This document shows, piece after piece, positions 3,106-52,739 of a stretch of 64,000 nt of DNA (within the stretch, counting starts at the first letter, position 1; every line of letters starts with the position of its first letter). Where the stretch lies: NCBI GenBank assembly GCA_025594325.1, contig JANHCV010000005.1:1240001-1304000 (forward strand), in the 5' to 3' direction. Source of the stretch: Blastocladiella emersonii ATCC 22665. Taxonomy: Eukaryota > Fungi > Blastocladiomycota. The notes below the pieces were generated by a model, which saw nothing but the letters and a program-made list of their open reading frames with translations, had not been told where the DNA came from and did no database searches. A program made the position numbers and the translations under genes.

Positions 3106-3151
3106 TCAAGGACGCGGCTCGCCCTGACGTGACGCAGGGGCGGGGTTGATC
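3064..3151 (+). repeat. Perfect 44-bp tandem duplication spanning the transposase-like gene stop codon
   Basis: aaggacgcggctcgccctgacgtgacgcaggggcggggttgatc at 3064-3107 and 3108-3151. Confidence 0.95.
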
Positions 3152-34492: not shown

Positions 34493-37005
34493 ATGGCCCG
34501 CGCCCGCGCCATCCCGACCCGCCGCCGCAAGGCGCTCCTTCCGCTCCTCGCCGTCGCGGTCCTCCTCGGCCTCGCCGCTCGCGCTGCTGCCCTCCCCATC
34601 TCGCCCACGGCTGCCGACGGCGGTGGCGGCGCGACCATCATCAAGTCGACCGTGATCATCGGCCCGCCGTCGCTCGACGCTGCCCCGACGCCCGTGCCCG
34701 CTGCTGCTACGGCGCCGGTTCCCGACACGACGCTCGGCCCCGGGTCCGTCATGGCCGTCCCGCCCAACCTCACCTCGACCACCGCGACCTCCGCCACCTC
34801 GCCCGGCGGCCCGGGCATCGTCATGTCCGTCCCGCGCACCGCGGCGGGCGACGCCGCTGCGAACCGGCTCAAGTACGCGCGCCCGGTCCCGCTCGTCCCG
34901 TCGGCCGTGTTCGTGACCGACGTCGACATGGACCCCGTCTCCCTCGCCGTTTCCGACGCCGCGACGGACCCCGAGACCCTCGCCCTGCGCCTTGCCGAGA
35001 CCGTCCTGCAGGTGCCCGCGTCCGAGCTCCGCGTGCGCGACGTCGTCAAGACCGCGACGGGCGTGGTCCCGCGCACCGCCGCGGACGCGGTCCCGCCGCC
35101 CCCGCTCGCGCCGCACCCGCCCACGACCAACGATGGGGGTGTCGTCACCGCCGTCTACCTGCGCCAGGTCGTCCACGGGCTCGATGTCGCGAACGGCGAC
35201 CTCAACGTCAACGTCGACGCCAAGACGGGGCGCGTCGTCGGGTACGGCGACCGCCTGTTCCACGGGATCCGGCCGGTCCTCCCGCCGTTTTCTTCGGGCA
35301 CGGGTGGGGGTGCGGCGGCGGTCGCGGCCGCGGGGCTCGTCACGCCCGAGGACGCGTTCGCGGCGCTCGCCGCCGTGCTGGGCATCGAGCCCGACGTCGA
35401 AGACGTGCAGGAGGTCCCGACCATCCCGTCGGGCGACGACACGAGCGGCACGACCTCGGCCGCCGCGGTCGCGGGCGCGGTCCGCCGCGCGCCCGTCTTC
35501 GAGCTCACGACGCCCGCGACGCCGGCCCCCGTCTCCGCGACCTTCGCGTACCTGCAGACGTCGGCGGGCGAGCTGGTCCTCGTGTACGAGTTCACGGTCG
35601 ATCTCGGCGCGCGGTGGTACAGCGCGCACGTCAACGCGGGGTCGGCCAAGGTCGAGTCGGTCGTCAACTGGGCCGCCGACGCGTCCTACGCCGTCCTTCC
35701 GCCGCAGGCCGACGACGACCCGGCGCAGATCCGCGTGGTCGAGATTTTGGGAACGGGGACCGCCGGGTCGCCGCTCGGCTGGCACGATATGGGCGTCGAG
35801 GCCGGCGGCAAGTTCACCGACACGCGCGGGAACAATGTGCTCGCCGAGGAGAACCGCGCGGGGAACGCCGGTGTTTTCGGCACGGGGCATCGGCCGGACG
35901 GCGGGGCGGGGCTCGCGTTCCTCGACGTGCCCGACCTCAGCAAGGACCCCGCCGACTCGGACGCGAGCGCCGCGGCCGCGACAACCTCGGCCTTCTTCTG
36001 GACCAACCTCATGCACGACGTCGCGTACCGGTTCGGGTTCGACGAGCAGGCCGGCAACTTCCAGCAGAACAACCTCGGCCGCGGCGGGCTCCAGTTCGAC
36101 GCGGTTCAGGCCACGGTCCAGGACGGCGGCGCGCCTAACAATGCGTACTTTGCTACGCCGCCTGACGGTTACAGGTACGCTTCTTTGCTACGTATCGCTC
36201 GCGGGGACAGGAACTAACGGATCCACCCAACGCACGCACACGTAGCCCGCGCCTCGTCGCCGGCATCTTCGCGTCGACGACGCCGCGCCGCGACACGGCG
36301 CTCGACGTGCCGGTGCTCGTGCACGAGTACACGCACGGGATCGCGTCGCGTCTGACGGGCGGCCCGTCCAACGCCAACTGCCTGGGCACGCTCGAGTCGG
36401 GCGGGCTCAACGAGGGGTGGGCCGACACCCTCGCGCTCGTCCTGACCGCGAAGCCCACCGACACCCGCACCACGCCGCGCGTCATCGGCGCGTGGGTCTC
36501 GGGCAACCCCGCCACGGGCCTGCGCGCGTTCCCGTACTCGGCCGACGCGCTCGCCGCGGGGACCAACCCGCACACGTTCGCGTACGTCGCCCGCCAAGAG
36601 TACCACGAGGTGCACCGGCTCGGCGAGGTGTGGGCGGCGGTCCTGTGGGAAGTCTACTGGGCGTGCGTCGACATGTTCGGGTTCCGCGCCCTCGTCGACC
36701 CGTCGGGCGCCGTCATGGAGGCCAACGGCGGGCCCATGAACGGGAACGAGTTCTTCACCCTCGTCGTCCTCAACGCGCTCAAGCTCCAGCCGTGTAACCC
36801 GACGTTCGTCGAGGCCCGCGACGCGATCTTGCTCGCCGAGGCCGCCCTCACGGGCGACGGGACCAGCGCGTCGGGACGGTTCGCGTGTCTCCTCTGGTTC
36901 GCGTTCGCGAAGCGCGGGCTTGGGGTGGGTGCGGCCGGGTCGATCCGCGACGGGTTTGTCCAGGAGAGCTTCGAGGTGCCTGAGTGGTGCCCGCAGTGGC
37001 AGTAG
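34493..37005 (+). CDS. Fungalysin (peptidase M36) with FTP propeptide; intron ~36174-36245
   Basis: Signal peptide; VYLRQVVHGLDVANGDLNVNV (FTP); YRFGFDEQAGNFQQNN; NNAYFATPPDG; HEYTHG; GGLNEGWAD; EVHRLGEVWA; LKLQPCNPTFVEARDAILLA; FAKRGLG. Confidence 0.95.
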
Positions 37006-37089: not shown

Positions 37090-37842
37090 CCGCCGCAGCT
37101 CGGCCATAGCCACGACCGCGGTGCTCGGACTGGGCCCAAGTGCCTCGCGCCCATCCAGCACGCGACCTCGGCCACGGCGCGCCCAATCGCTGCTGGGTTG
37201 ACGGACCTCAACGCGCGGCTCGCCGGCCGCGCCGTCTACTGCGCCATGGTTGCCGCGAGCGAGCACAACAACGCGACCTGCACGTCGTCGTCTGCACTCT
37301 ACATCGCAGTTCCGCGTCGCCGACCGAGGAAGAGGACCGGGAGCACGCCCAAGAGCGCCGACCGAAGCCACGACGTTCTCGTCGTTGGTCTTGAACCGGT
37401 CGGACGGTCCCGCAATGCGAAATTATGGGCCTCGGGTGCGTATGAGATTGGCGAGCGCAGCCGAGTCTTGGTCTGCGAGTGCAGCTGAGCGGTGGTCCGC
37501 GATCGCAGCAGAGTCGTCTTGCTGATATGGAAGAGTGGGCGGCGGCGTGCTCGAAGGCAGCGATAAGGACGTGCTCGACTGGTCGCAAGGCTCGGGCGTG
37601 TTTTCGACTGCCTGGATCAGCGGGAGCTCGGCAGAGCTCGCGAGCGGTTGGGATGAAAGTGTCGAGTAAGTAAGCGCGTCGTTCGGGGAATCGCGCGAGA
37701 CTGCTGCCGCGAACCGAAGTCGCCGAAGCACCGCACCGCGAATGCAAATCAAGCTCCGATCAAGACGCGTGAGAAGGTCCTCCTCCGTCAAGCATTGCTG
37801 GTCCGCATCATCTCCTGCGTGAGGTTCGGGATCGGGCGGCAA
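37090..37842 (-). pseudogene. Gag-like array copy A (internally deleted pseudogene)
   Basis: EEDLLTRLDRSLICIRGAVLRRL...ALANLIRTRGP*FRIAGPSDRFKTND has a premature TAA and then jumps to C-terminal-like VALLCSLAATMAQ and RAVAEVACWMGARHLGPV. Confidence 0.7.
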
Positions 37843-38284
37843 GCACAGGGCGTCAGGAGGCCGTGTTGCCTGCGCCCAACTGACAAGCTGGGTCCGTGAC
37901 TTTGCTGAGAGTCATGCTAGATATTCATTTGTTTAACGCATCGTGCCAGTGGTGTGGTGGAGGAGCGTGAAGGCGGAAGAGCCTGCCTGGTGAAGTCGAC
38001 CAACGACGCCACAGTTGCGCTGCGCGACTTGAGCATCACCTGATATCGGAACGCGTCTCGCGTGTCTTGACCCCCGACCGACCTTTGACCAGCTACTCGT
38101 TCGTTCGTTGCATGAAGGCAATGGGCGTATTCGAAGTGCACGATCAGCGTCAGCAAGCTAGAGGTTCGCCTGAGAGTATCCCTCAGAACTGGAAACTCGC
38201 AGCAGCAAGGGGCACGGCTTTCAAACTCATCGGCCAACAATATCGCTCTGTTCTTCCGTACGTCTCACCAACTCAGTGCTCAAA

Positions 38285-40090
38285 TCAACTACGCTTGCCT
38301 GTGCGCTCCTCCGCAAACGCCGCCACCGCGGTCCACACGGGCACAAGACGCTTGCGATTCCACTCGCGCGGGAACTCGGCGAGCGCGCGTAGGAACCACG
38401 GGCTACGCCGAATTGCCTCGGCGTTGGCGGACGGCAGCAGATGTTTTTGCGCCGCCTGCTGCGCGGCCTCCTCTTCCATGGTCGCAGCGAGGGTGAGGGT
38501 GAGCTCGACTAGCGTGTCGTAGTCGGTGCTACGCATCGCTGAGAGCGGCGGGGAGACGCCGGCCACGGCCAGAGCGTGCTCGATGGTGCCCGCAATCCGG
38601 CCTGCGTTGGCCGACAGCGAGCAAGCGATGAGCGCGTGTCTCTGTGCAGCCGACCGCAATGACTCAAAGTGCATGCAGTACACGCACGGCGTCGCGCGCG
38701 CTCGGGCGAGTTTTGGGTCCGCAGGAGAACGCGAGCGGGTGCGGGAGCGGGAGCGAGAGCGCCGGCGGCGAGAGTGTGAATGACAAGAAGGCGATTTGGA
38801 GCGAGATGGAGACCGAGAGCGAGCCTTCTTTCGACGTAAGTGGGAGGGAGAGCGCGAACGGGAACGGGAGCGGGACCGTGAACGCTTGCGTAAACGTGAA
38901 TGAGAGCGAGAGCGCGATCGCCGGCGAGAACGTGATGAGCGGGTCGTGCGGTGCTTATTGGTTCGCGACCGCGACCGCGACCGCGACCGCGAGCGAGACC
39001 GCGAGCGAGACCGATTCCTGGTTTTCGCGCGCGAGCGTGAACGCGAGTGGGACAGTTTTTCGGTTAGTAACCGTGAACGCGAGCGAGACCGTTCCTTGGT
39101 TTGCGTGTGCGAGCGTGAACGCGACCGTGAGTGCGAATCCGTGGGCTGGCCGCGCTCAATCAAGCGCATCATGTCCGTAAGCGAGGACGTCGAGTCTGCG
39201 GCCATGGCCATAACCTCGGGAATGCGAGACGAGGGATGATACGAGAGCTTGTCGATGAAGCGTTGCTTGACCTCGACGGAGGTAGACATCACGTTAAAGT
39301 CACCCGGGCTAGCCTTTAGGTGCCGTTCAAAGCTGGCATGATAGGCGGTGGCCGACATAAAAGTGTGCGCATCGAGTGACATGACCACCGAAAGCCAGTC
39401 TGGCCGCTGCGCCGAGTTGACAAACCCTTTGAAGTGGTTCGAGGCCTCGTCGTCCGACATAGTCGGGCGGAGCGTCGCTAGACACCACAGACGCAGTTCA
39501 AGCGACATGTTGCGGCGCGCGATGAGAAGCCCGCGGGCAAGGGTCCCGCGCGGGAGGACGCTGCGAAAATGGTTGAGAAATGCGGCATCATCGTCGGTCT
39601 TAAACCGTCCCTTCGGGCCTGGAATTCGAAAGTACGGCCCGCGAGTGCGCACAAGGTCGGCGAGCGCGGCCGAGTCATCATGCCGAGGTGAAGGAGATTG
39701 GGGAGCGGCGTTTGGCGGAAATGCCGAGGGTGCTTGCAACTGGCCGCGAGGTTCGAGTTCTACTTCCGTGACGGTTGACGCCCGTCGAGCAGAGTTTTCT
39801 AGTGGTGGAGTTGGAAACGTTGAGCGTGAAAGCGCGCAGTCGCTGCCCTGCGAATCAGACGAGCCCGCCTCCGCGCGCTGTAGCCGATTCCGTGCAGCGC
39901 TGCGAATACAAAGTATGCGCTGCTCGAGGCGCGTGTAGAGCTCCCCAGCCGTGAAGCGTTGCCCGTCTGTTCCGACTTCTGCGCGAGGCCGGCCACTGGG
40001 CCCGCTGGAGGACATCACGAGCACGACTGGGCGCTCGCTGTTGGCTGCAGGCAGATCGTTAGCAGAGTCCTTTTCGTTGCTCCAAGTCAT
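38285..40090 (-). CDS. Gag-like array copy B (about 601 aa; capsid-like core, RS tract, CX2CX12HX4C knuckle)
   Basis: Intact intronless ORF homologous to copies C-F. Knuckle CVYCMHFESLRSAAQRHALIAC. Confidence 0.8.
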   Translation of the reverse strand: MTWSNEKDSANDLPAANSERPVVLVMSSSGPSGRPRAEVGTDGQRFTAGELYTRLEQRILCIRSAARNRLQRAEAGSSDSQGSDCALSRSTFPTPPLENSARRASTVTEVELEPRGQLQAPSAFPPNAAPQSPSPRHDDSAALADLVRTRGPYFRIPGPKGRFKTDDDAAFLNHFRSVLPRGTLARGLLIARRNMSLELRLWCLATLRPTMSDDEASNHFKGFVNSAQRPDWLSVVMSLDAHTFMSATAYHASFERHLKASPGDFNVMSTSVEVKQRFIDKLSYHPSSRIPEVMAMAADSTSSLTDMMRLIERGQPTDSHSRSRSRSHTQTKERSRSRSRLLTEKLSHSRSRSRAKTRNRSRSRSRSRSRSRSRSRTNKHRTTRSSRSRRRSRSRSHSRLRKRSRSRSRSRSRSPSHLRRKKARSRSPSRSKSPSCHSHSRRRRSRSRSRTRSRSPADPKLARARATPCVYCMHFESLRSAAQRHALIACSLSANAGRIAGTIEHALAVAGVSPPLSAMRSTDYDTLVELTLTLAATMEEEAAQQAAQKHLLPSANAEAIRRSPWFLRALAEFPREWNRKRLVPVWTAVAAFAEERTGKRS

Positions 40091-40365
40091 TTTAGCTTTC
40101 CATTTGTTTACTGCATTGTGGTGAGAGGGAAGAGGCGGAGGAGACGGAGGAGGCTGATGCAGGGCTTTGCCCTGAAATATTGGGTGACCCCTTCGAGTTC
40201 TATCCTGGGTCACGTGCTCTTGGCGGATTTCACTTGGTTTCATCACGTCGTACATGTCACGTGACTGTGGCTGACCGCGTTTTGCGGCTTGCTCGCGACT
40301 TTGGCTCGGGCGACGTTGCGCACTCCACTTCTCCTCCACGAAACGAAAGCTTGAGCGGCTGTAAC

Positions 40366-40731
40366 ATGCCGCAACGCGACAGTCGGCCAAGGTGGACCGC
40401 GGAGGAGTGTGACCGCCTTGTCGACTGGCTGTGCCTTGACTCGAGCAACTACGCCACCTTCGCGTCGCACGGCCACCGCGCTGCTGCCGCTCGACACGCT
40501 GCCGCCTGGCTCGCTCAACATTCTGCTCATACACGCGCCCCTGAGCCCGTCGGCAAGAAGCTCCATGAGCTGATCGACGCATACCATGGACTGCTCGCGT
40601 CGCTGTCGCTGTCCGCCGCAGATCTGCGCGACCCATCCTCTCTCTCAGCCCTGCGGCTCGCCCTCATCAACAACGACCCTACCACTGCTCTGAACTTTCA
40701 ACACGCGTGCCACCGTTCAACGCGCATGTAA
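40366..40731 (+). CDS. Short Myb/SANT-like (trihelix-type) DNA-binding domain ORF, probably truncated
   Basis: RPRWTAEECDRLVDWLCLDSSNY...VGKKLHELIDAY follows the W-T-x-E-E...L...W/Y pattern of Myb/SANT-like domains. The ORF ends after about 121 aa. Confidence 0.5.
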   Translation: MPQRDSRPRWTAEECDRLVDWLCLDSSNYATFASHGHRAAAARHAAAWLAQHSAHTRAPEPVGKKLHELIDAYHGLLASLSLSAADLRDPSSLSALRLALINNDPTTALNFQHACHRSTRM

Positions 40732-41393
40732 GCACTGCACTTACTTCAACCACCTTGTCCTCAACGGTTGCCCACAGCTCGCTTTCGGCTTCTGGTTCTT
40801 CGCCTCCGCCTACCGCATCTGCAACCGTACCTCCACCTGCTCCGGGTCTGGCGTTGATTGTCACATTTGGGCTTGCCTCATCAGGCTGATACATGTCACG
40901 TGAGTGGCTGAACGCGTCCCCTCGCCCTTTCTCCCTCGCGCGCCCTCGCTGAATCAAAGTCAACCCGCAACAAATATGTACTCTGTTGTTGCTACTTGAT
41001 GTGTCAATGACGTTTCTTGGTTGCTGTGCGACTTCGGCCGCATCCGCGCCAAGTTGGCGACTGTACCTCATTTAGCTCCCTTACAAAGTTAATTTTGCAG
41101 CTGAGCCAGGGCGGCGGTTCACCTTACGTGTTATCTTGTCACTGTCGCTCTGCGCAGCATGTTATGCGGCAACAGCAGCAGCAGCGCGGCTGAGTTGAGT
41201 CGCAGCTCCTGATCCTTGCCTTGATCGTGTCGCGATGGAGATGAGCAACCATATGCTGGGGCAGAAACTCGACAGGAACGCAATACTTTCGCTATGACGA
41301 TCTGAGCGTAACCCGAGCTAACTCAACTCGTTTGTTTGTTGACTCTCAAGCGCAGCACTCAATCCTCGTCTTGGCTCCAATTAGTGCTGCGCG

Positions 41394-41540
41394 GCAAGGC
41401 GACGCTGATGATCAACGCAAGAGGCGACGCTGGTCATTGACGCAACGAGGCAACGCTGATCACAAACTCAACAAGGCGACGCTGATCACGACGCAACGAG
41501 GCGACGCTGGTCATCGATGCAACGAGGCGACGCTGGCCGC
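41394..41540 (+). repeat. Degenerate minisatellite, about 6 units of 25-27 bp (core CAACGAGGCGACGCTG)
   Basis: Units include caacgaggcaacgctgatcacaaact, caacaaggcgacgctgatcacgacg and caacgaggcgacgctggtcatcgatg. Confidence 0.85.
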
Positions 41541-42106
41541 CTTTAAGAAGTTTCCTCGAGCTTGCCATCACGCGGAACATGAAGATCAGCGTGTTCGTTC
41601 GCGCGGCGAAGCGCAGGGTCGGCAAGCGAACATTTGTAAGCCGGGAGGTGGGCGCGCCGCACGATTTGGTCAGAGAGTACGAAAGCATGCGCGGCGCGAG
41701 GTTGGGTAAGGGCGAAAGGGCAAAGCCCTGCGCCGGTGCCAGCCGAAGGCTGTGTGACGGCAAATCAGGCGTGTAATTGCGTCACATGATATCGGAACGC
41801 GTCTCGCAAATGCCGGCCGACGGCACACCGCGCCACCGCTCGTGCCCGTCGGCATCCAGCTTAAAATTTTATCAAAATGTTTTACATCTAACCTGAAATG
41901 AAGATCGCGAACGGCGGATAGGCCGGATTACAAGGCGACTTCGCGCGGGGACAAAGCAAGTCTACCGACTCAACCCGAACAACTGTGACCGAGAGAAGGA
42001 CCACAAGCTCGCCGGATAGTGTAAGTGAATGACATGTATTGATGATGGTATTCAGTCAACAACACGCTCGGCTCTGCGCGGCCATTATCGTTCCCAACTC
42101 TCCGAA

Positions 42107-43788
42107 TCAACGACCCCTCCCCACGCGCCCCTTAGAAATCGCCGCCGCCGCAGTCCACACGGGCACGAGCAGCTTGAAGTAGAGCTCACGCGGGAAGTCG
42201 GCAAGGGAGCGCAGATACCACGGCGCGCGCCAGAACGACTCCTTGTTGAGGTCCTTGTGGCGTGCCTCCGCCTCCTGCTCCGCCTTTTTCTCCATGGTCG
42301 CAGCAAGCGAAAGCGAGAGCGCGACCAGCGCGTCGTAGTCGGTCGACCGCATGGCAGAGAGCGGCGGGAAAATGCCGACCAGGGCAAGCGCGTGCTCAAT
42401 AGTCTCCCCAATGCGCTTCGAGTTTCTCGCCTGCGGGCACCGGACAAGAGCGTGGCCCCGGGCACGTTTGCGCAGCGGTTCAAAGTGCATGCAGAACGCA
42501 CACGGCGCCACCTCCGCTCGGGCAAGTTTCGGGTCGATTGGAGAGCGTGATTGACAGCGAGCGTCAGAGAGTTGACGGTGAGAGCGCGACGTGCGACGCT
42601 GCGAGGAATTTGAGCGGCGGAAAGGTGATACGGATAGAGTCCGAGAAGGAGACCGGGACCGTGATCTTGCACGGCGAGAGCGAGAGCGTGGATGCGAGCG
42701 AGATCGGGATTTGCTGCGTGACCTCCGGTGATTTTCGGAGTCCAACCGCGGCCGCCGCGAGCGGGACCGCGGACGATTCCGTTCACCGCGAGTGCTGGCG
42801 AATTGCAAGTCCAAAGGCTGGCGTGAATCCAATCGCGGGTCACGTCCAATCAAGCGCATGATATCCGCGAGCGAGGATGACGTGTTCAAAGCCATGGCCA
42901 TGATTTGAGGGCTACGCGCTGACGGACTGTACGACAGCTTTTCAACAAAGCGCTCCTTGACCTCGGCGGAGCGAGAAAGCGCGTCAAAGTCGCCCGGACG
43001 CGCCCGCAGAAACCGCTCGAATTTTCGAATTGAACGTAAAAGTCGGCATCCGACCTCATGTTGCGAGAGTCGAGGGTCAGGAGCGACATGAGCCAGTCTG
43101 GCAGTCGCGTTGCGTTGGCAAATTTGCTGAAGTGCGTCGCGGCCTCGTCATCCGACATGGTCGGGCGGAGCGTCGCGAGGCACAATAGCCGCAGATCGAG
43201 CGCCATGTTGCGAAGAGCGACGAGGAGCCCGCGGGCAAGGGCTCCGAACGGGACGATCTCGGAGAAATGGGTGAGAAACGCGTGGCCATTACTGGTCTTG
43301 TACCGTCCCGTCGGGCCCGGGGTGCGGAGATATGGCCCGCGAGTGCGCACGAGGTCGGCGAGCGCGTTCAAGTCGTCCTGCTGAGACGGAGAAGCGGGAA
43401 GAGGAGCGCTTGGCGGCAAGGACGAGCGTTTGTCACACCGATCGCGAGGTTCGCGTGCTGCTTCCAAACTCCTGGTCGCTGCATGCTGAGATGAGATCCC
43501 GAGCGGTTGGTATAGAAGCGTAGAGTGTGATAGGGCGTGATTGATGTTCAGCGAGTCATGCGAGACCGCCGCCGTTGCGAGCCGTAGCCGTTGCCGCACG
43601 GCACTGCGAACGCAATATAAACGCTCCTCAAGGCGCGTGTAGAGCTCCGCCGCTGCCAAGTTTTGCGCGTCCGTCTCGTCACCTGCGCGAGGCCCGACAG
43701 AGGCCCGCGTGAGCGGGAGGTCGCTGGTGTCCGCAAGCAGCTTGTGAGCGGTGTCATTACCATTGCAGCAAGTCATGGTGGTTTTCAT
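42107..43788 (-). pseudogene. Gag-like array copy C, single frameshift at ~43020
   Basis: ORFs 42886-43962 and 42107-42901 are contiguous once an 8-nt insertion (CAATTCGA-AAATTCGA-GCGG) is removed. Knuckle CAFCMHFEPLRKRARGHALVRC. Confidence 0.8.
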
Positions 43789-44153
43789 TTGCTTACTGCA
43801 TCGTAGCCAGGGTGCGGAGGAAGGCGGACAGCAGCGGTGAGACCGCATCACATGATAAATGAACGCGTCCCGCAAGGGCCTGACGCGCCGACCTCCGGCT
43901 GCGTGCTTTCTTCCGCCGCTCGCAATCCAATGACCAAAGTTCGCCCTGCTCCTACCTGCCACTTACTTTCGTTAGGCGACGCCGCCGCCGCCACACGCTC
44001 CATTTGGCGGCGAACTTGACTGACTGATACACTCACTGCCAGCTTGCTGCGATGACGAAACCACCAAGCGACGTGGCCCATCAGCTCAGGCGCGAGAGGG
44101 GCAGCGGATTCGGCGGATAATTCAATCATATATCCAAGTTCAGCTCACTACGG

Positions 44154-45794
44154 TCAACCCACCCTTCGCCGCTTGTCCATCTTGATTGCAACATTCCGCC
44201 AGATCGGAGCCAGGTGCGTGCCGCACATGTTGCGCGGGAACTCGGTCAGCGCACGGAGGTAGGTCGGGGTACGCTTGATCGATTCGACCAAGTGCGGCTT
44301 CAGAGACAGGACCTCATCTCGAGTAATCCGCTCCAGGGTATCAGCAAGCTCCAAGCACAGCGCGATGAGGGCGTCGAAGTCGCCGCTGATCATGGTCCGT
44401 ACTGGTGGACTTACGCCGGCCATAAAGAGGGCGTTTTCAATCGATCCGGCGATTCGCGTCGAGTAAGCGGCGTGCATGCAGGAGGGGAGCGTGTGTAGGT
44501 GTGCCTTGAACCGCAGCGTGGCAAAGTGCTGGCAGTACACGCAAGGCGGGACATTAGCGCGTTCGAGTTTTGACTCGACGGGACGTGGCGAGCGGCAAAG
44601 TGAACGAGAGCGAGATCTGGACGATAGCGTTGAGCGAGACCGGCCTGAACATCGACGCGATTGGCTTGAAGCTGAGCTTGACCTACGTCTCGAACTCGAG
44701 CGCCTCGAACTCGAGCGTCTCGATTTGCGCCTTGATTTTGAGCGCGATCGAGGACGCGGAGGTGAGCGTCGGCGGGATCGCGACCGCGACCGCGACCGTG
44801 AGCGCTCACGAGCCGGAAGGCGGGGGCGCACCCGCAAGCGTGAGCGTGATCTTGACCTTGAACGCGAACGTGACCGTCCACGAGTCCGAGAAGGCTCCTT
44901 TTGAATAGGTTGGACGACTCGCATTCGCGGTCGGGACTGCAGGTTCGACCGGTTCAGCGACAAGCGCTCGTCTTCCTCGATAAGGCGAGCGATATCGCCA
45001 AGCGTGGATCTCGAGTCGTCGGCCATGGTCATGATTTTGGCATTGCGTGAGGAAGCGAAGCAGGACAGCTTGTCGACCAGAAGCTGCTTGAAGTCTGGCA
45101 AGCGGTTGAGCACCTCGGAATCCCCTCCGCTCTCGCGGAGGACCTGCTCGAACATGGCGAGGTACTTTCCGACGGAGCCGAACGCGAGCGGCTCGAGCAA
45201 TTGCAAACGAACGACCCAACCTGGGCAGGCCGTTTCAGCAAACTCGCGGAAGGTCGCTGCGGCAACGGAATCGGACATGTAGGGCCGTATACTCGCAACG
45301 CAGGCCATGCGGAAATCAAGTGGTAGGTTGTAACGCGCGACGAGAAGCCCCTGAGCGAGCGCTCCGGGTGGGACGAGTGTGCGGAATAGGCGAAGGAAGT
45401 CGTCCGCGTCATCCGTCCTGATCCGGCTCCTCGGCCCCGCGATGCGAAAGTACGGTCCGCGTGTGCGCACGAGAGTAGCGAGAGCAGCCGTTGTTGCCGA
45501 ACCACCGTCTTGGGGCGGAGGCGGGTGCGACGGAGCCGCCAAAGTCGCAAGTGGATGGACTGGACTGTTTTGAGGAGCCGTCGCCGCGACTTGTAGGCGT
45601 TGCTGCACAACGCTGCGAATATTGAGTAGGCGTTGATCCAAGCGCGCATAAATCTCCTTTTCTGCCATGGGTTTCCCGCCTGCGTCGACTCCTTCGCGTG
45701 TGCCGAGGGAGGGCGGAGTGAACGCGACGGGCGCCTTGATTTTATCGCGTTCGAGGGGTCCACAATTCATGTTCGTCAGATTGCAGCAAGTCAT
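44154..45794 (-). CDS. Gag-like array copy D (546 aa)
   Basis: Intact ORF. MHR-like RLQLLEPLAFGSVGKYLAMFEQVL, RS tract and knuckle CVYCQHFATLRFKAHLHTLPSC. Confidence 0.82.
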   Translation of the reverse strand: MTCCNLTNMNCGPLERDKIKAPVAFTPPSLGTREGVDAGGKPMAEKEIYARLDQRLLNIRSVVQQRLQVAATAPQNSPVHPLATLAAPSHPPPPQDGGSATTAALATLVRTRGPYFRIAGPRSRIRTDDADDFLRLFRTLVPPGALAQGLLVARYNLPLDFRMACVASIRPYMSDSVAAATFREFAETACPGWVVRLQLLEPLAFGSVGKYLAMFEQVLRESGGDSEVLNRLPDFKQLLVDKLSCFASSRNAKIMTMADDSRSTLGDIARLIEEDERLSLNRSNLQSRPRMRVVQPIQKEPSRTRGRSRSRSRSRSRSRLRVRPRLPARERSRSRSRSRSRRRSPPRPRSRSKSRRKSRRSSSRRSSSRRRSSSASSQSRRCSGRSRSTLSSRSRSRSLCRSPRPVESKLERANVPPCVYCQHFATLRFKAHLHTLPSCMHAAYSTRIAGSIENALFMAGVSPPVRTMISGDFDALIALCLELADTLERITRDEVLSLKPHLVESIKRTPTYLRALTEFPRNMCGTHLAPIWRNVAIKMDKRRRVG

Positions 45795-45868
45795 GGTGGT
45801 CCTTCATTTGTTTATCATGTCATGGGAGTAGGGCAGGGAGAGCGGCGAGGCCCTGTGGCTGCGAGTCA

Positions 45869-45890
45869 TCACATGATACCTGAACGCGTC
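45869..45890. promoter_or_regulatory. Representative copy of the bipartite TCAC(A/G)TGA-N7-ACGCGTC motif upstream of a Gag-like gene
   Basis: tcacatga-tacctga-acgcgtc, about 75 bp upstream of the copy D ATG. Equivalent sites at 12485, 38036, 41782, 43848, 48391 and 52639. Confidence 0.6.
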
Positions 45891-46027
45891 TCTCGAGCCA
45901 TGGTGGTGCTAATCCCTCATCTACAACAAGCTCCTCGTAGGGATATAAATATACTCAAAGAACAAGGATACGCTCGATCAACCTCCGTGATGTGTCGCTC
46001 TGGATCACATCACTTCTCCTTCACTAC

Positions 46028-48301
46028 TCACCGTTTGCGCCGGTTTTTGGCGTGCTTGGCTAACGCTCTGCAGATCGGGGTCAGATGCGTGCTACACATG
46101 GACGGCGGGAGCTCGGCGATTGCGCGAAGGAAAAGCGGGGCGCGCCGAACCGCCTCCGCTTTGCTAGCTGGAACCGAGTTCAGGTTCGCCTGCTCCGCTT
46201 CCTGCTCAACCGTATCCGCAAGCTCAAGCGACAACGCGATAAGCGCGTCGTCGTTGTGGAGTTGCGCTTGGGAGGCAGTCGGGAAAATGTTCAGTGTCGC
46301 TAAAGCACGCTTGATGACAGTCGCAATCTGTTCCACCTTTTCAACCATTTGACAATCCGAAAGCGCATGAGAGCCGGTGACGCGCTCAAGCCAAGGAAAG
46401 TGCGTGCAATATACGCACGGACGAGCACTGGCGCGCGCAATCCGTTGCTCGGCCGCCTCCTCGGGAGGCGTCGTCAAGGGCGAGGATGCTCGCACCGCCG
46501 TACTGGAAGGCGGCTGTACCTGTGGACTCAAAACTAGAAGCGGCTCACGCAAGCGACGCGCGAGTGCAGGCGAAAGCGACGAAGTGGGAGAGCTCGAGCG
46601 CGACCAAGCGAGGCGAGATCCAGGGCGTAAGGGCCGCACCGGGGACCGCGAGCGCGAACGCGATTGTGAGCGAGAGTCATGTTCCAAACCGGCCGATGCT
46701 TCGTCATCAAGCTCGGGGCAACCGTGGTACATGAGGAAGCGGCGCGAGAGCCGCTTGTTGGGCCCGATTGCACTGACAAGCTCGTCGAGCGTAGAAGTAA
46801 AGTCATTCGCCATGGCCTCGATGTTAGGGCTGCTCGCTGCAGGAATAGTCGATAGCCCCTGTAAAAACGTGTTCTTGAACACGGGCGATTTGTTAAGCAA
46901 GCCTTGATCGCCCCGGCCCTCGAACAAAAGCCGCTGGAAAGCCGCCAAGTATACCTTGACAACGCTAAAGCTGTCCGGGTCAATCGTCTTGAGACGGTTG
47001 AGCCAGTCGGGAAGCACCGTAAGCTGCGCAAGTTCAATGAAGCGGGCCGCCGCCTCGCTATCTGGCATATCTGGGCGAAGCGCGGCCGCACAAAGCATTC
47101 GAATTTCCGGCGACATGTTGTGACGTACGGAAAGCAGGGCTTGAGCAAGCTGACCACGCGGAACAAGCACCGCGAGTCGCTGCAAGGATACGGCCGGGTC
47201 GTCGGTTACGAATCGGCTTTTCGGAGCAGGGACACGGAAGTAAGGACCGCGGGCGCCAATCAATTTAGCAAGCGAAAGTTCGAGAGAGTCGGCTGCAGAA
47301 TCGTCAAGCTGTTGGTTAGGTTGTTGCTGCTGTTGCGGTTCCTGGTGTTGTTGCTGCTGTTGCTGCTGCTGCTGTTCTTGCTGGATCGGCGGCGATGGCG
47401 GCCGAGGAAGAGTAACAGGCGACGCGGATGCCGGTACCGCGGCCGGAGAAGGCAAGGATGAGAGTTGCGCGGGCGTCGGCATCGAGAAAAGCGGAATCGC
47501 GGCAGAGACAGGCAGGGATAGCACCGGTGCGGGCGTCGTGAAGGAAAAAGGCGGTGCGACAGCTGGCGTAGGCATGATAGGCGCTGGTGCAGGCGCTGAG
47601 AGCGAGAAAATAGGTGCTACATTTGGCGCAGGCAAGGTCGGCGCTGGTGCGGGTGCTGGAATCGAGAATAACGGGGCCACAGTTGGCATGGGCAAGTTCG
47701 GCACCGGTGCGGGTGCTTGAACCGAGAATAGCGGGGCCACAGCTGGTGCATGCAAGTTCGGCAGCGGCGCGGGTGCCGAAAGCGCAAAAAGAGGTGTCAT
47801 GGTCGGCGCAGGCAAACTTGGCATTGGCATAGGTGCTCGTGGCACTAGTTGCGGTGGCGGTGGAGTCGGCGCCGGAGGTGAGGAAGAATGCGGTGACGAG
47901 TTGAGCGTGTTCGGGTGCTCCGAAACAGACCGTTGTGAGGCACCAGCTGTGCGCGCAGAAGCTTGTAGCGGTCGTTCAAGCACCGCACAAAGTTGTTCCA
48001 GCTCGTTCACGGAAGCAATAAGTCGGGTGGCGCCCGGTGCCGCAAGAGCGTTCGTCCCTGGCTGCGCCCGCCGCTGACCAAGAACGGTCGTAAAGAGGTT
48101 GGAGCGCTCTTCAAGGAGACGGCAGAACGCTCCTTGAAGCAGGTTCCGCTGGTCTTGCTCGGCGGGCGGCAGGACAAGAGTCGACTCGAAGGCGCGCATT
48201 GCCGTCGCTGCGACGGCAAGGTCGCCGCCACCCGACTGTGTCGGGTTTGTTGCGCTAGTCCCGTTGCCTGGAGTCATTGATCCAAGTAAAGAGTTATTCA
48301 T
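46028..48301 (-). CDS. Gag-like array copy E (about 757 aa, with Pro-rich 20-aa repeat insertion and polyQ)
   Basis: Intact ORF. LNRLKTIDPDSFSVVKVYLAAFQRLL...TFLQGL; knuckle CVYCTHFPWLERVTGSHALSDC. Confidence 0.8.
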   Translation of the reverse strand: MNNSLLGSMTPGNGTSATNPTQSGGGDLAVAATAMRAFESTLVLPPAEQDQRNLLQGAFCRLLEERSNLFTTVLGQRRAQPGTNALAAPGATRLIASVNELEQLCAVLERPLQASARTAGASQRSVSEHPNTLNSSPHSSSPPAPTPPPPQLVPRAPMPMPSLPAPTMTPLFALSAPAPLPNLHAPAVAPLFSVQAPAPVPNLPMPTVAPLFSIPAPAPAPTLPAPNVAPIFSLSAPAPAPIMPTPAVAPPFSFTTPAPVLSLPVSAAIPLFSMPTPAQLSSLPSPAAVPASASPVTLPRPPSPPIQQEQQQQQQQQQHQEPQQQQQPNQQLDDSAADSLELSLAKLIGARGPYFRVPAPKSRFVTDDPAVSLQRLAVLVPRGQLAQALLSVRHNMSPEIRMLCAAALRPDMPDSEAAARFIELAQLTVLPDWLNRLKTIDPDSFSVVKVYLAAFQRLLFEGRGDQGLLNKSPVFKNTFLQGLSTIPAASSPNIEAMANDFTSTLDELVSAIGPNKRLSRRFLMYHGCPELDDEASAGLEHDSRSQSRSRSRSPVRPLRPGSRLAWSRSSSPTSSLSPALARRLREPLLVLSPQVQPPSSTAVRASSPLTTPPEEAAEQRIARASARPCVYCTHFPWLERVTGSHALSDCQMVEKVEQIATVIKRALATLNIFPTASQAQLHNDDALIALSLELADTVEQEAEQANLNSVPASKAEAVRRAPLFLRAIAELPPSMCSTHLTPICRALAKHAKNRRKR

Positions 48302-48524
48302 TGGTTTCTCGCATGGTCTTCGGGGAGCGGCAGCTGGGGCGCCGAGCGAGCCGCATATTTGCTCGCGTGCGGCGGTTTCAGGAGACCTCCTCACGTTATT
48401 CCTCGACGCGTCTCGCGGTGTCTCCCCACTCGCGCAACGGGCGGACATGCCCGATAAGTGGCACATGAGGGACATGGTGTTTGAGGTACAAGGTGCTAGT
48501 TTATTCTTCTCACTCATTCTCAAC

Positions 48525-49157
48525 TTAGTGCTTGTGGTAGCGCTCGGACGCGAGGTACGCCTTGACCTTGTCGTTCTGGGCGACGGCGTCACGGACTTTG
48601 ATGAGCGCGGGCGCGTTCTCGGCCGTGATGGCGCCGGGCATGGCGACGTTGACGGCACCGATCTGCGCAAACAGGGCGAGCTCGAGGTACGTCAACTTGC
48701 CAGCAAAGTAGAACCCGTTCTCGCCGTTGGCCTTGAGGAACTTGGTGTGCGCGGCGACAAACGCGGGCAGCGTCGTGGCCAGGAACTCGGCCTTGGCGGC
48801 ACCCTTCTGCTCCTCGGGCGTCTTGTACACGATCTTGACGACGGCGTTCTGCAGGTCAACGATCGACTCGTAGTAGCCGTCAGCGAGCAGGCGCTGGTGC
48901 TCGTCGGCGTGGACCAGGTCGAACTTGGCGGCGAGGTGGCGCACGATGGCCGAGGTCTGCGCAACCAGCTGGTCGGCGTGCGTGTTGTCGTCGTGCACGA
49001 TCAGGGCGGGGAGCTGACCGAACGGCAGGTTCGGCTTCTCGGCGGGCCAGTTGGTCGGGTACTTGTTGGCGTAGGTGACGCCGGCGGCCTCAAACACGAG
49101 GCGGATGAGCTCGGCGCGGCCGCGGATCGGGAAGTAATAGACGGTGTAGGAGACCAT
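48525..49157 (-). CDS. GST: Glutathione S-transferase (sigma/alpha-like N-terminus)
   Basis: YTVYYFPIRGRAELIRLVFEAAGV, LPFGQLPAL, QTSAIVRHLAAKFDL and GKLTYLELALF. Confidence 0.93.
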   Translation of the reverse strand: MVSYTVYYFPIRGRAELIRLVFEAAGVTYANKYPTNWPAEKPNLPFGQLPALIVHDDNTHADQLVAQTSAIVRHLAAKFDLVHADEHQRLLADGYYESIVDLQNAVVKIVYKTPEEQKGAAKAEFLATTLPAFVAAHTKFLKANGENGFYFAGKLTYLELALFAQIGAVNVAMPGAITAENAPALIKVRDAVAQNDKVKAYLASERYHKH

Positions 49158-49668
49158 GTTGCTGAGGAGGTTTGGTGCTTGGGTGTGCTGCTGGGTGGAC
49201 GAGCTGATAGAGATTCAGTCAGTCCGATGCGCGGGAACGCCGCGGCTTTATAGCGCCGCGCGCGTGGTGCGTCCGAACTGCGAGCGACTGTGGTCCGGTG
49301 AAGAACGGCTGACGCAGCAGGCATGGGCGCACCGCGGAAAATAGTTGCACCGGAGGCGGCGGCTGGTGGCTATTTCGAGCGAGCTTGGGCGTCAGCGTCA
49401 GCGGGTGGCGCAGCAGCTCACGTCAGCAACGAACGCCCTGAACGAGAGCGGTGCACCCATTTTTGCCGCCCAACTCGAGAGGCGCGTCGCGTAAGCGGGG
49501 CTCTTGCGCCGCTGGAACGGCCATTCAGCCCGCTTGCAACTGATGCTGTCATGGAGAGCGAACGAGGCGAGCGAACATTTCGCACTTTGAGGAAAACTTT
49601 CACGAAGGGGATGTATCAGGGAACAGACCAACAAGCCGAGAACAACCAGTTGATCGCGGGAGAGATGC

Positions 49669-50490
49669 TCAGTCTACGATCGCGCCGTCAGCGCGAGCCC
49701 GGGCCCTGGCCGCGTCGAAACTGGCCACGAGCTGGTCGCCGGCGGGGCAGGAGCAGCGCGCCGCCAGTGCTTGGCGGCTGTGCGTGCGGAACCACGACAT
49801 GGGCGCGTAGTTGACGGCCTCGGAGCAGTGTCGAGACAGGCGTAGTACGCGCCGGGGAAGACAACCTAGACAGGGTGACGCATGTATCAGAGGAGGACGA
49901 GATCATGGAGAGGAGCGACGCGAGATGTACGAACCACATAATCGCCCGCGTTCTGCACGATGCAGTGCACGTTGACGCCGGCGCCCTTGAGCTTGAACGG
50001 GTTGAGGAACAACGGTTTGCGTCGCAACGGGTTGTCGCACTGCTGCTCCTCGTCTGTGAGCTCGACCCACTCGCGCGCGAGCTGCTCCACGCGAGCCGCG
50101 TCCATCAGGTGCACGATTACCAGATCTTGGGCGCGCCAAAGAACAAGTAGCTGATGATAAAAAGGTGGTAGTCCTCGACGTGCCACGGGAGGATCGTGCG
50201 CCACGAGCCAAAGAAGATGTGGGACGAGCACGCAGCCGCGACGTGCTGGTCAAAGTACATGATCGCATTGCCGCCCAGCGCGCGCATGTTCCAAGTATCG
50301 CTTGAGCTGGCGCTGTCTTCGTGGGGCGAACCGACGTAGAGGGTGGAGAGCGGCAAGTTATGGTCATACCGCTTGTAGTATTTGTCGGTAGTCTGATAAA
50401 TGGCGTGTTTGAAGAGGAGCTTGACAAGCGCGACTGCATCGCGCAGCCCCAGCTTGTAGGTGGCTGCGTCAATAAGATCGCGGTGCGAGG
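49669..50490 (-). pseudogene. KDM4/JMJD2-like JmjC histone demethylase fragment, frameshifted
   Basis: DTWNMRAL, HIFFGSWRTILPWHVEDYHLFIISYLFFGAPKIW, frameshift, CDNPLRRKPLFLNPFKLKGAGV, QNAGDYV, intron, VVFPGAYYA, frameshift, EAVNYAPMSW...CSC. Confidence 0.78.
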
Positions 50491-50503
50491 ATCCATGGTA
50501 AAG

Positions 50504-52573
50504 TTATATTTCTCGCTTCGTCCTCGCATCCGCAAGCCCCGCGATCATCGTCCAGATCGGCACCAGTCGGCTCTTGTTCATGGCTCTGGGAAAGTCCGCG
50601 ATGGCGCGCAAGTACCACGGCGCGCGCCGAAGCCCCTCGTCCATATCGTTTGGCGCCTTGGCACGCGTGCCCTTGGCGACCACCTTTTCCATGGTTTCGG
50701 CGCACCGAAGCGATAGGCTCACGAGCTCGTCGTAATTGGTGCTCCTCATCGCGGCCTGCGGCGGGAACACCTCGGCCATGGCCAGCGCGTGCTCGATGGA
50801 CCCAGCGATGCGCTCGATGCCGCTCGCGGGCGGGCACTTGATGAGGGCGTGTTTGGGTGCGTTGTGCGCGAGCGGCGGGAAGCGTACGCAGTAGACGCAT
50901 GGCCGAGCCTGTGCGCGTGCCGATTTAGGGTCGTGGTCCAAGTCGCGCAAACGCGGTCGCGACCTTGAACGAGAGCGAGAGCGAGAATGCGACGCGCGTC
51001 GGCAGCTTCGACCACGGTTTCGCGAGCGCGACCTTGAACGAGATCTTGATCGAGGTTTCGTGCGAGAGCGAGACCGAGACCGATAGCGTGTTCGAGTTTT
51101 TCCGCGGTCGCGGCTCTCACTCGAGCTCTTGCCTTGGTCCGGGCGATAGCTACCGGCGTTAAATAGGTTTGGCGAGCGAAACCACGTCGCTGATTGTACC
51201 CGGTCCGCCGCGTACGGCGTGCGCTCGAGTGACCAGGATTTTGGAAAGTGACGGAGTAGGTCAACAAGCGCGATGCTTGGATTTTGAATGAGAGGTGTCA
51301 CGTTCACGTCGCGCGAGCGGAAGGCAAGTAAAAGCCTGTCGCAGAAAAAGGCCTTGACATCGGAAGCGCGTAATAGCGCGTCGCTGTACCCGGGGCACCC
51401 GCGAAGAAGACGCTCAAATTTGGAGAGAAAGTGTTTTGCCCTGGGAAACAGCAGTGGGTTAGAATCCTCGAGGGCCGTCAGCCATGGTGGACGAGGACCT
51501 GCCTTGCGATCAGCTGAAGCGATAGCGAGGAAGGTCGCGGTCGCATCCTTGTCAGACATTTCGGGTGACAGCTGAGCAATGCAAGGAAACCGGATTCTAC
51601 GTGGTAGCTCGCAGCGATGTGAAAGCAAGGACTGGGCAAGGGAACCGGGTGGAACCGAAGCTCGAAGCCGATTGAGAAGTTCATGCGCATCGTCGGTTGA
51701 GTATTGATCCGTGGTCCCCGTCAGCCGGAAGTGAAGTACACGTTTGTCCATGGGCACTTGGCTGGTCGAGTGTTTGTCGGTCGCAGCAGCAGGTGGCGGG
51801 GCAATTTTTGGTCGCGGCGGCAAGGAAGGCAAGCCGTATGCGTAGTTTTTCGGCCAGAACGAAGGGAGATGGTGCAGAAGCTTCTTCAGTGAAACTCTTG
51901 GGTCGTGTATCTTGCCGACAATCAGAGACAGTTGCGGCGCAGTGAGGAACGTAAACTGATCAACGAAATACCGCTTGACGTTGACCGAGCACATGAGGGC
52001 TTCGCTGCTTGCTGAAGACTGACGAACTTGACGTTCAAACTCGGCAAAGTAGTGCATGACCCGCGCGAACTGAGAGGGGTGTAAATCTTTCACGGCCGCC
52101 ATCCACGGAGGCTGTGAATCTGGACCGTTACGGGACGAAGCATCGGGATGACGAGGCGGGGCATTCGGGTGGCTGGACTGCGGTGACGGCGGCAATGAAG
52201 GTGAAGTATCGGGCGATGGTGGTCGAGCATCTGGATTTTGAGCTCTGGAAGTGACCATGGCAAGCGACTCTTCAAGTTGCACGAGCGAGGATTCGAGCGT
52301 CTGGCGCCGTTGGTCAAAGTTTGCAAGAAACGCGAGCGAATCCGCATCGCTACTGTTTGCCGCGATCCGCTGCCGAAGTACAAGGTGGATGAGCTCCAGT
52401 CGATGTTCCATCATCTTTCGAAGCGTTTCGTAGAGATCTGTTTGCTGACAAGCCTCTCCCACAGGCTCCTCTGGGCCACACTGTGCTGCCGCGGCAAGAA
52501 TTGCGTCAGCGGTAGCTTTTAGTTCATTTGTTTCATTGCACAAAGTCGCTGCTTCATTTTGAGAGTGTTCCAT
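50504..52573 (-). CDS. Gag-like array copy F (about 689 aa; core domain appears partly duplicated)
   Basis: Intact ORF. Two related core segments (PPWMAAVKDLHPSQFARVMHYFAEFERQV and PPWLTALEDSNPLLFPRAKHFLSKFERLL); knuckle CVYCVRFPPLAHNAPKHALIKC. Confidence 0.8.
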   Translation of the reverse strand: MEHSQNEAATLCNETNELKATADAILAAAAQCGPEEPVGEACQQTDLYETLRKMMEHRLELIHLVLRQRIAANSSDADSLAFLANFDQRRQTLESSLVQLEESLAMVTSRAQNPDARPPSPDTSPSLPPSPQSSHPNAPPRHPDASSRNGPDSQPPWMAAVKDLHPSQFARVMHYFAEFERQVRQSSASSEALMCSVNVKRYFVDQFTFLTAPQLSLIVGKIHDPRVSLKKLLHHLPSFWPKNYAYGLPSLPPRPKIAPPPAAATDKHSTSQVPMDKRVLHFRLTGTTDQYSTDDAHELLNRLRASVPPGSLAQSLLSHRCELPRRIRFPCIAQLSPEMSDKDATATFLAIASADRKAGPRPPWLTALEDSNPLLFPRAKHFLSKFERLLRGCPGYSDALLRASDVKAFFCDRLLLAFRSRDVNVTPLIQNPSIALVDLLRHFPKSWSLERTPYAADRVQSATWFRSPNLFNAGSYRPDQGKSSSESRDRGKTRTRYRSRSRSRTKPRSRSRSRSRSRNRGRSCRRASHSRSRSRSRSRPRLRDLDHDPKSARAQARPCVYCVRFPPLAHNAPKHALIKCPPASGIERIAGSIEHALAMAEVFPPQAAMRSTNYDELVSLSLRCAETMEKVVAKGTRAKAPNDMDEGLRRAPWYLRAIADFPRAMNKSRLVPIWTMIAGLADARTKREI

Positions 52574-52739
52574 GGTGGTGGCGGTGGGAAGCGCGCGGAG
52601 CGCGTCGTTCGCCACTCGAGGCGCCACAGCGGGGATGGTCACATGATTGATCGACGCGTCTCTCCTCCTCTCGGCTCCTTGTTGCAGTCACGTGGGCCGA
52701 ACGCAGCCGCAAGCTGCTTCATGGCGGCACAACAAGATG

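Follow-up and report, generated by a model that had tools for sequence, protein, structure and literature searches.

The capsid protein (CA) is folded into two lobes, which a flexible linker connects (PMC6525542). In the Gag proteins of Ortervirales (orthoretroviral and Ty3/Metaviridae Gag), a basic tract and a Cys/His zinc site, the C-X2-C-X4-H-X4-C knuckle, follow this all-alpha core, and the elements, which carry pol, protease and LTRs, occur as dispersed insertions. Mammals carry domesticated Gag genes (PNMA, PF14893; Arc; RTL/SIRH including PEG10), which are intronless, pol-free ORFs of the gag-only type under purifying selection. These genes are single-copy or form small dispersed families and are syntenic across many species. 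Fv1 is a restriction factor derived from Gag. The Ty1 restriction factor p22 is encoded within Ty1 itself (PMC4599808). For Scheffersomyces yeasts, a preprint describes STORM, a tandem array of four domesticated totivirus-like capsid genes (bioRxiv 10.64898/2026.05.24.726934).

Here, we analyzed a stretch of 64,000 nucleotides (the window) of Blastocladiella emersonii ATCC 22665, contig JANHCV010000005.1 (100% identity over 22,917 nt). On its minus strand lies a cluster of one gene family, which consists of four intact genes (B, D, E, F), a frameshifted copy C and the 5' remnant A. These copies represent a real, new and B. emersonii-specific gene family, which is possibly gag-derived. Our preferred reading, to which we assign a probability of about one half, is that the cluster is a small outlier of a large B. 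emersonii family, the core of which is capsid-like and of Gag origin, and which is now a resident gene family.

With the mammalian genes, the family shares the intronless gag-only-type ORFs, the lack of pol and the signature of purifying selection, but it was found in one species, comprises dozens of copies or more, is arranged in tandem, is very divergent and includes pseudogenes. The likeness to p22 and Fv1 would be one of concept only (a pol-free capsid-derived protein possibly disturbing the assembly of related elements) and, unlike the situation with p22, a cognate retroelement with a related Gag was not found for the B. emersonii family. STORM is similar in that fast-evolving capsid-like genes are lined up in tandem at one locus of a fungus without the remainder of the virus. 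However, STORM is of clear totivirus descent, whereas the descent of the B. emersonii family is uncertain, the family is far larger and no totivirus capsid was among its matches in BFVD.

Copies and shared architecture of the cluster

The first-pass annotation had listed six minus-strand paralogues, four of them with intact ORFs despite strong divergence. For B, D, E and F the positions were confirmed, and the longest ORF of the region (887 codons) exceeded by far those of shuffled sequence (mean 234, maximum 413 codons). Six copies are indeed present, but copy A (37372..37972, not 37.1-37.8 kb) is only a 5' remnant, which retains the N-terminal helix and about 30 core residues and lacks the remainder of the gene. 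When B and D were used as tblastn queries, A was found to be broken into two frames with at least one in-frame stop. A separate comparison matched its core start at E 2e-9. Copy B (38285..40636) is an intact ORF of 783 amino acids, in which an internal Met may be the true start; it encodes the core at 39116-39679, the RS-rich linker at about 38726-39115 and the zinc site with the helical C-terminal domain at 38288-38725. Copy C (42107..43962) is full-length and free of internal stops and has one frame change; a single indel of this kind could also be an assembly error. Its nearest relative is B (59% amino acid identity in core and C-terminal domain). Copy D (44154..45794) is an intact gene of 546 amino acids with the core at 44940-45497, an RS linker and the zinc site plus C-terminal domain at 44157-44582. 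Copy E (46028..48517) encodes 829 amino acids from its first ATG at 48517, and its stop-to-stop ORF (46028-48670) overlaps a glutathione S-transferase (GST) gene. A long N-terminal extension precedes its core (46724-47287) and C-terminal domain (46031-46456); in this extension, tandem units of 20 amino acids rich in Pro and Ala (47526-47796) are present together with a polyQ tract (47320-47383). Copy F (50504..52642; 689 amino acids from the first ATG) is intact and the most divergent of the copies; it carries the core at 51215-51778, the C-terminal domain at 50507-50938 and, at 51854-52141, a further, incomplete copy of the second core half. All copies lie on the minus strand with gene-to-gene gaps of at most about 1.5 kb, and a 138-nt direct-repeat family (D1) is common to A, B, C and D.

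The B, D, E and F proteins can be aligned along their length with 36-44% identity and 92 invariant columns. This alignment confirmed the order of parts proposed before, which runs from an N-terminal helix through a Pro-rich spacer, an all-helical core of about 185 residues and an RS-rich linker to the zinc site and the C-terminal domain. An internal repeat was not seen when the two core halves were compared by hhalign. The linker is basic and variable, and Arg plus Ser account for up to 88% of the residues in a 40-residue window. The zinc site, C-X2-C-X12-H-X4-C, had been called invariant; this holds for the five copies B-F, but the site is missing from A. All four ligands are invariant across the 22 family sequences compared, and the spacing in relatives varies as X11-14/X3-5. 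The C-terminal domain, which begins with the zinc site and is helical, is conserved as claimed, but measures about 130 rather than about 90 residues.

The former interpretation of the zinc site as a Gag nucleocapsid (NC) knuckle was not supported. The middle spacing is X12 instead of X4, and the site is modelled as the start of the 130-aa helical domain, for which no known fold was matched. Taken by itself, the X2/X12/X4 spacing resembles that of classical-type zinc fingers. In our model, the ligands are surrounded by short helices and not by a beta-hairpin, and there was no zinc finger match in Pfam, so that the site does not correspond to a classical C2H2/C2HC finger.

Similarity of the core to capsid proteins

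Two AlphaFold models were built on copy D, using alignments of window sequences and retrieved database proteins, and reached pLDDT values of 91 and 93. The core model (pLDDT 91, pTM 0.81) is all-alpha with about 11 helices and an N-terminal beta-hairpin. The core resembles Ortervirales CA in its length of about 185 residues, in its all-alpha composition with helices enough for two lobes and in the predicted hairpin; as in Ortervirales Gag, a basic tract and a Cys/His site follow the core. Searching PDB with Foldseek, we found the CA of MLV at rank 1 and retroviral CA among 9 of the top 50 matches (best E 0.72, non-significant). In BFVD, retroviral Gag occupied ranks 1 and 2 (probability 0.90 and 0.57; best E 0.12, non-significant), and about 11 of the top 50 matches were Gag or caulimovirid coat proteins. 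Matches of the whole core gave TM scores of 0.27-0.38 at rmsd values of 11-19 A, and unrelated helical proteins (acyl-CoA dehydrogenases, 14-3-3, globins) scored almost equally. Whole-protein TM scores can drop for CA because of its two lobes and flexible linker. The capsid fold postulated by the first-pass annotation is therefore backed by the ranking of the structural neighbours, but not by E-values (0.12 or higher) or TM scores.

Profile comparisons gave a similar picture. None of the four window proteins matched Gag or PNMA domains of Pfam, and no family sequence tested reached the curated thresholds of Retrotrans_gag (PF03732) or PNMA (PF14893). For one paralogue, the chimeric model P0003, PNMA was the best Pfam match (E 9e-5, 22.4 bits vs a cut-off of 25) and Retrotrans_gag also appeared (E 0.033), both sub-threshold. 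These matches fall on the segment that had been called similar to the major homology region (MHR-like). Noise-level Gag/PNMA matches (E 0.03-0.045) were obtained for one out of 22 core domains. Among PDB sequences, neither the core profile, built from 22 sequences, nor the profile of the C-terminal domain gave more than chance matches. The C-terminal domain had no Pfam match, and Foldseek retrieved only generic helical bundles (E > 1) for its model.

The low significance of these matches leaves room for a different origin, which we consider possible but rather doubtful. The proteins may constitute an orphan, lineage-specific nuclear family with an RS domain and a zinc-binding site, born de novo or from a host gene no longer recognizable, that acts in RNA processing or chromatin regulation and has no link to Gag; the capsid likeness would then be the usual cross-matching of all-helical proteins. 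Consistent with this view are the absence of any significant Gag match by sequence or fold, the lack of pol and LTRs in the window and in the contig-8 loci described below, and the finger-type rather than knuckle-type zinc spacing. Moreover, RS dipeptide tracts are a hallmark of SR-type proteins, and the weak matches of the full proteins involve only RS-region families (RSB_motif, RSRP; RS tracts of SRSF1 and DHX8). However, retroviral Gag/CA ranks first in two independent structure libraries, and the only sub-threshold Pfam domain matches, PNMA and Retrotrans_gag, coincide on the same segment. The RS tract does not define the family, since it is weak or absent in many contig-8 paralogues. Although the long Arg-Ser runs resemble those of SR proteins, Pfam found no RRM in the window proteins, which consequently lack the combination of RRM and C-terminal RS domain, and no other SR-protein or host domain was detected. 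In addition, codon usage differs from that of host genes, with GC3 values of 0.57-0.81 for the family and 0.90-0.97 for the neighboring host genes.

Distribution of the family and its genomic surroundings

Searching 1.84 billion representative proteins with the core profile, we obtained seven matches, all of them encoded on contig 8 of B. emersonii, and no homologue outside this species. Relatives were also absent from 2.9 million viral contigs and from metagenome contigs. The alignment of 22 family sequences was so divergent that search patterns could not be derived from it. The window genes themselves are missing from protein collections: an exact-sequence look-up of D returned no record, and word-indexed searches with whole D or with the C-terminal domain alone gave nothing, probably because the RS tract took up the words in the case of whole D. 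In seven sampled stretches of contig 8 (about 154 kb in total), we detected 51 further core copies, whereas a control locus (L006) had none. The copies form same-strand arrays, mostly with one orientation per locus, and several are fragmentary. The sampled arrays are spread across about 1.1 Mb, and the family appears to dominate this part of contig 8. These data agree with the earlier proposal of a lineage-specific expanded family. In contrast, the term domesticated is not supported, since among the 1.84 billion representative proteins no homologue, and hence no syntenic orthologue, turned up beyond B. emersonii.

The reported absence of pol and LTRs was confirmed. No RT, PR or IN match of Pfam was obtained in the window, the cluster has no LTRs (long direct repeats were looked for in the window and not found), and scanning the window for Rfam families and tRNAs gave no match. 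Neither the seven contig-8 loci nor the database matches showed linkage to pol or LTRs, with the sole exception of a sub-threshold rve-like ORF on contig 8, which is separated from the closest family copy by several kb and by a helicase ORF on the plus strand. Besides the zinc site, differences from Ortervirales Gag concern the lack of any significant match, of pol, protease and LTRs, and the arrangement as tandem arrays.

The surroundings on contig 8 bear on an alternative that we regard as unlikely, namely that the family encodes a structural or nucleic acid-binding protein of an uncharacterized large mobile or virus-derived DNA element on this contig and that the window cluster is a transferred fragment of it. 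Around the arrays, we found ORFs of the kind that characterizes mobile DNA, namely two helicases of the Herpes_ori_bp type (E 4e-16 and 4e-11), fragments of PIF1, a DDE transposase of the Harbinger type and the sub-threshold integrase core-like ORF. Annotated genes number about 0.21 per kb in that region of contig 8 vs a genome mean of 0.57 per kb, and GC3 is below that of host genes. CpG and TpA statistics gave no sign of methylation- or RIP-type decay that could account for the low GC3. The window cluster itself argues against such an element. It is flanked by host genes, on the left by a convergent fungalysin (Peptidase_M36) gene (34493..37005, plus strand, GC3 0.92-0.96) and on the right by an ABCA-type ABC transporter gene (55748..63673, minus strand, three ORF pieces, GC3 0.92-0.94). 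An ordinary host gene outside the family, the GST gene mentioned above (GST_N + GST_C_3; 48525..49157, minus strand, GC3 0.93), is situated between E and F, and no mobile-element gene adjoins. The copies are old and diverged (28-59% amino acid identity within the cluster), unlike recent insertions, the array shares no nucleotide similarity with the contig-8 loci and is not bounded by terminal repeats, and the viral contigs contained no relatives. A giant-virus origin was also considered and rejected, as neither BFVD, the viral contigs nor the literature searched provided a supporting match.

Coding constraint, family growth and possible role

Pairwise dN/dS ratios (NG86) between paralogues ranged overall from 0.15 to 0.55, the least saturated pairs (dS 0.66-0.75) giving 0.29-0.43, and they were clearly below 1 in the core and the C-terminal domain alike. 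The value of about 1 that the first-pass annotation had linked to mere transposon remnants was thus not observed. These ratios point to constrained genes rather than decaying remnants; the intact copies are held under purifying selection. It is very improbable that the copies are functionless gag-only remnants of dead LTR, LINE or DIRS retrotransposons. Two of the six window copies are indeed broken, several contig-8 copies are fragments and codons are poorly adapted. On the other hand, four ORFs (546-829 codons) have stayed intact at a core identity of 28-47%, both domains show dN/dS values far less than 1, the zinc ligands are invariant over 22 copies, as are core residues, and the head-to-tail same-strand arrays are devoid of LTRs, pol debris and target-site-like repeats.

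According to our preferred reading of a resident family with a Gag-derived core, this core would be an old and much-diverged CA-like domain from a retroelement Gag, which became joined to a new zinc-helical domain and has persisted as a resident gene family. Growth of the family would have proceeded by tandem and segmental duplication rather than by transposition. The core would mediate self-association, and nucleic acid, most likely RNA, would be bound by the RS tract together with the zinc domain. Packaging of RNA, which the first-pass annotation had suggested alongside restriction of retrotransposons, would likewise be a hypothetical function. The proteins may function in genetic conflict, either by restraining or competing with mobile elements or by self-serving amplification. 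Such a role fits a family that diverges rapidly, amplifies in tandem, turns over pseudogenes and is poorly adapted in its codon usage; rapid divergence and copy-number expansion would also be in line with Gag-derived restriction factors. More tentatively, and with considerable doubt, the proteins may be regarded as an independent capsid-fold family, which lost the other retroelement parts, gained the zinc-helical domain, spread into tandem arrays and satellite clusters and is self-amplifying or defensive. If this were true, such a system would have no counterpart among known domesticated Gag genes.

If truly derived from a capsid, the core would make this family, in a lineage close to the root of the fungal tree, the first example outside animals of a large gag-only family amplified in tandem. 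It would also show that arrays of capsid genes can be maintained and can diversify in the absence of the machinery of reverse transcription. Regardless of the capsid link, the family makes up a sizeable part of the B. emersonii genome and contributes two confidently predicted domains for which the searched structure libraries gave no significant match; one of these domains would be a new zinc-binding helical domain. B. emersonii is under development as a model for cell biology and optogenetics (PMC9730499) and its gene catalogue therefore matters. In this species, the family is almost wholly unannotated or mis-modelled, and some of the annotated models merge adjacent paralogues.

Composition and setting of the array

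The assembly (GCA_025594325.1) has been described (PMC9730499), and positions on JANHCV010000005.1 correspond to the window position + 1,240,000. The best relative of a reductase encoded near the array comes from B. emersonii ATCC 22665, and the genomic locus of that relative matched window 12150-35066 with 100% identity (22,917 nt). The GC content of the window is 56-74% and its genes are long, intronless or intron-poor, and eukaryotic. On its minus strand we found four long ORFs, copies B (38285-40636), D (44154-45794), E (46028-48670, a stop-to-stop frame) and F (50504-52642), which aligned over their full length with 36-44% identity and 92 invariant columns. The longest ORF observed comprised 887 codons (shuffled sequences: mean 234, maximum 413) and a chance origin of ORFs this long is excluded. 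Domain-wise tblastn located two further copies: copy C is full length and spread over two frames with no internal stops, and copy A (minus strand, bounded by 37372-37972) is a 5' remnant that spans two frames and contains at least one stop. The C-X2-C-X12-H-X4-C site was exact in B-F, and in copy F the second half of the core, an all-helical domain of about 185 residues, is present once more in partial form. These data indicate that the array of related ORFs noted in the first-pass annotation was sound. Its inventory overlooked a complete GST gene (48525-49157, minus strand; GST_N + GST_C_3, 210 aa, GC3 0.93), which is located within the array between copies E and F. Its 3' end is overlapped by the open frame upstream of E and, since the stop-to-stop frame of E extends into the GST gene, translation of E most probably begins at the first ATG or downstream of it. 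At its N-terminus, E has an extension with about 4.5 tandem 60-nt units (47526-47796), which encode 20-residue repeats rich in Pro and Ala, and with a polyglutamine run (47320-47383); both are lacking in the other copies. The 1.4-kb B-C spacer contains a 26/51-nt tandem repeat (41397-41535; about 5 or 2.7 copies).

The array is flanked on the left by a fungalysin gene (34493-37005, plus strand) and on the right by an ABCA transporter gene (55748-63673, minus strand). The latter consists of three ORFs (55748-56905, 56993-59920, 59978-63673), apparently separated by short introns or frame breaks.

Extent and evolution of the family

When a profile of the four intact window cores was compared with 1.84 billion representative proteins (cut-off E 1e-3), only seven matches were obtained (best E 1e-13), and all seven were B. 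emersonii "hypothetical proteins" encoded on the 1.8-Mb contig JANHCV010000008.1 (contig 8). The window's own genes were not among the matches and, since they are missing from the protein collections searched, they are probably absent from the deposited annotation. No relatives were found in viral or metagenome contigs. Six-frame profile scans of seven contig-8 loci (about 154 kb, record 0.19-1.30 Mb) yielded 51 core-domain matches, a number that refers to the sampled stretches and not to the total copy number because sampling was biased toward sites with an annotated member. Within each locus the matches mostly shared a single orientation, and every sampled 20-25-kb stretch (L001-L005, L007, L008) was packed with same-strand copies; the control host locus L006 gave no core match in such a scan. 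The gene models of two annotated contig-8 relatives, P0001 and P0003, each span several adjacent paralogues and are therefore chimeric. Annotated gene density in the sampled region was about 0.21 per kb, compared with 0.57 per kb genome-wide.

The conserved architecture runs from the core over a linker to C-X2-C-X11-14-H-X3-5-C and a tail of 110-130 residues, and all four zinc ligands were invariant in 22 sequences. Whereas the window copies have a strong RS tract, many of those on contig 8 have a weak one or none.

The larger ORFs of the window array and its vicinity gave no match to RT, RNase H, protease or integrase, and none of the window copies is bounded by long repeats, either direct or inverted. 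Intergenic gaps measure at most about 1.5 kb and thus there is no room for a pol gene between copies. RT, RNase H and protease were likewise not found in the sampled contig-8 loci. There is good support for the earlier view that this is an expanded, lineage-specific family lacking pol, and the contig-8 arrays extend this family well past what had been seen.

Nei-Gojobori dN/dS values were 0.15-0.55 overall, in both domains, and 0.29-0.43 for the least saturated pairs (dS 0.66-0.75); synonymous sites are saturated in most pairs, so that these values are rough. Despite this roughness they exclude neutral decay of the copies. GC3 amounted to 0.57-0.81 for the family domains and 0.61-0.65 for whole family genes, compared with 0.90-0.97 for the flanking genes and the embedded GST; family and host genes did not differ in CpG and TpA statistics. 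No nucleotide similarity links the window array to the contig-8 loci, and the array hence represents an old branch. In locus L003, paired copies about 10.8 kb apart (69% amino acid identity) point to segmental duplication.

Possible capsid likeness of the core, and the C-terminal zinc domain

The first-pass annotation considered the proteins capsid-like. Sequence searches of the PDB gave no match, and Pfam yielded only weak matches below cut-off for the window proteins (RSB_motif and RSRP in the RS tract of F, PRCC in E). The model of the D core (11 sequences) is confident (pLDDT 91, pTM 0.81) and predicts a beta-hairpin at the N-terminus together with about 11 helices. Foldseek returned no significant match for this model in PDB or BFVD, but retroviral capsids top both lists. 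In PDB, MLV CA ranked first (E 0.72), followed by HIV CA-SP1 and EIAV p26, and retroviral CA accounted for 9 of the top 50. In BFVD, the Gag proteins of a fish retrovirus (E 0.12, probability 0.90) and of an endogenous retrovirus took the first two ranks, caulimovirid coat proteins and lentiviral Gags came next, and Gag or coat proteins made up about 11 of the top 50. The TM scores were 0.27-0.38, with unrelated helical proteins close behind. CA lobes are mobile about a flexible linker (PMC6525542). Such mobility would lower whole-domain scores; it could account for low values and counts as no evidence for a CA fold. When the chimeric P0003 model was compared with Pfam, PNMA (E 9e-5; 22.4 bits, below the cut-off of 25) and Retrotrans_gag (E 0.033) matched a Trp-rich segment that aligns with the stretch previously called MHR-like, but only 1 of 22 trimmed cores repeated these matches, and did so at noise level. 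Taken together, capsid likeness is plausible but unproven, and we consider it about 50-65% probable that the fold is truly of the CA type. Domestication, RNA packaging and retrotransposon restriction are hypotheses.

For the C-terminal domain a helical bundle was predicted with high confidence (pLDDT 93, pTM 0.87), and a structure search with this model gave no meaningful neighbour. Its four ligands lie within the first 35 residues. Unlike a retroviral knuckle, the C-X2-C-X12-H-X4-C site is modelled as the start of a helical bundle, and the proposed CCHC knuckle was wrong in this detail.

Mobile DNA and other repeats

Alternatively, the family may be part of a larger, so far unrecognised element. 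The sampled contig-8 region is rich in mobile DNA: two Herpes_ori_bp-type helicase ORFs of about 850-1060 aa (L001 3738-6917, plus strand, E 4e-16; L004 19559-22111, minus strand, E 4e-11), PIF1 fragments and a Harbinger-type DDE transposase (L003 15890-17119, minus strand) lie among the arrays. An integrase-core-like ORF (L001 850-2016, minus strand) was sub-threshold (22.5 bits, cut-off 32.6); the family copy closest to it lies several kb away, beyond a plus-strand helicase ORF. The window cluster, however, has ordinary genes on both sides.

Four long window ORFs had no Pfam match (3441-4871, plus strand; 7989-8987, 9002-10615 and 53646-55067, minus strand). A family-like GC3 of 0.67-0.75 was measured for two of the four, and two were weakly matched by tblastn in contig-8 locus L005 (2895-4104). 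These ORFs may be members of further repeated families specific to the lineage. An inverted pair of 116 nt each (25575-25690 and 27228-27343, 100% identical, about 1.5 kb between) may represent a small foldback or TIR element; it encloses a 120-aa gene of the GenBank record with a weak RNase_H match, and akin DNA (75-86% identity) occurs at 6944-7283. The window also carries a perfect tandem repeat (3064-3155, 44 nt x 2.1) and a perfect microsatellite (15154-15216, CCCGGC x 10.5).
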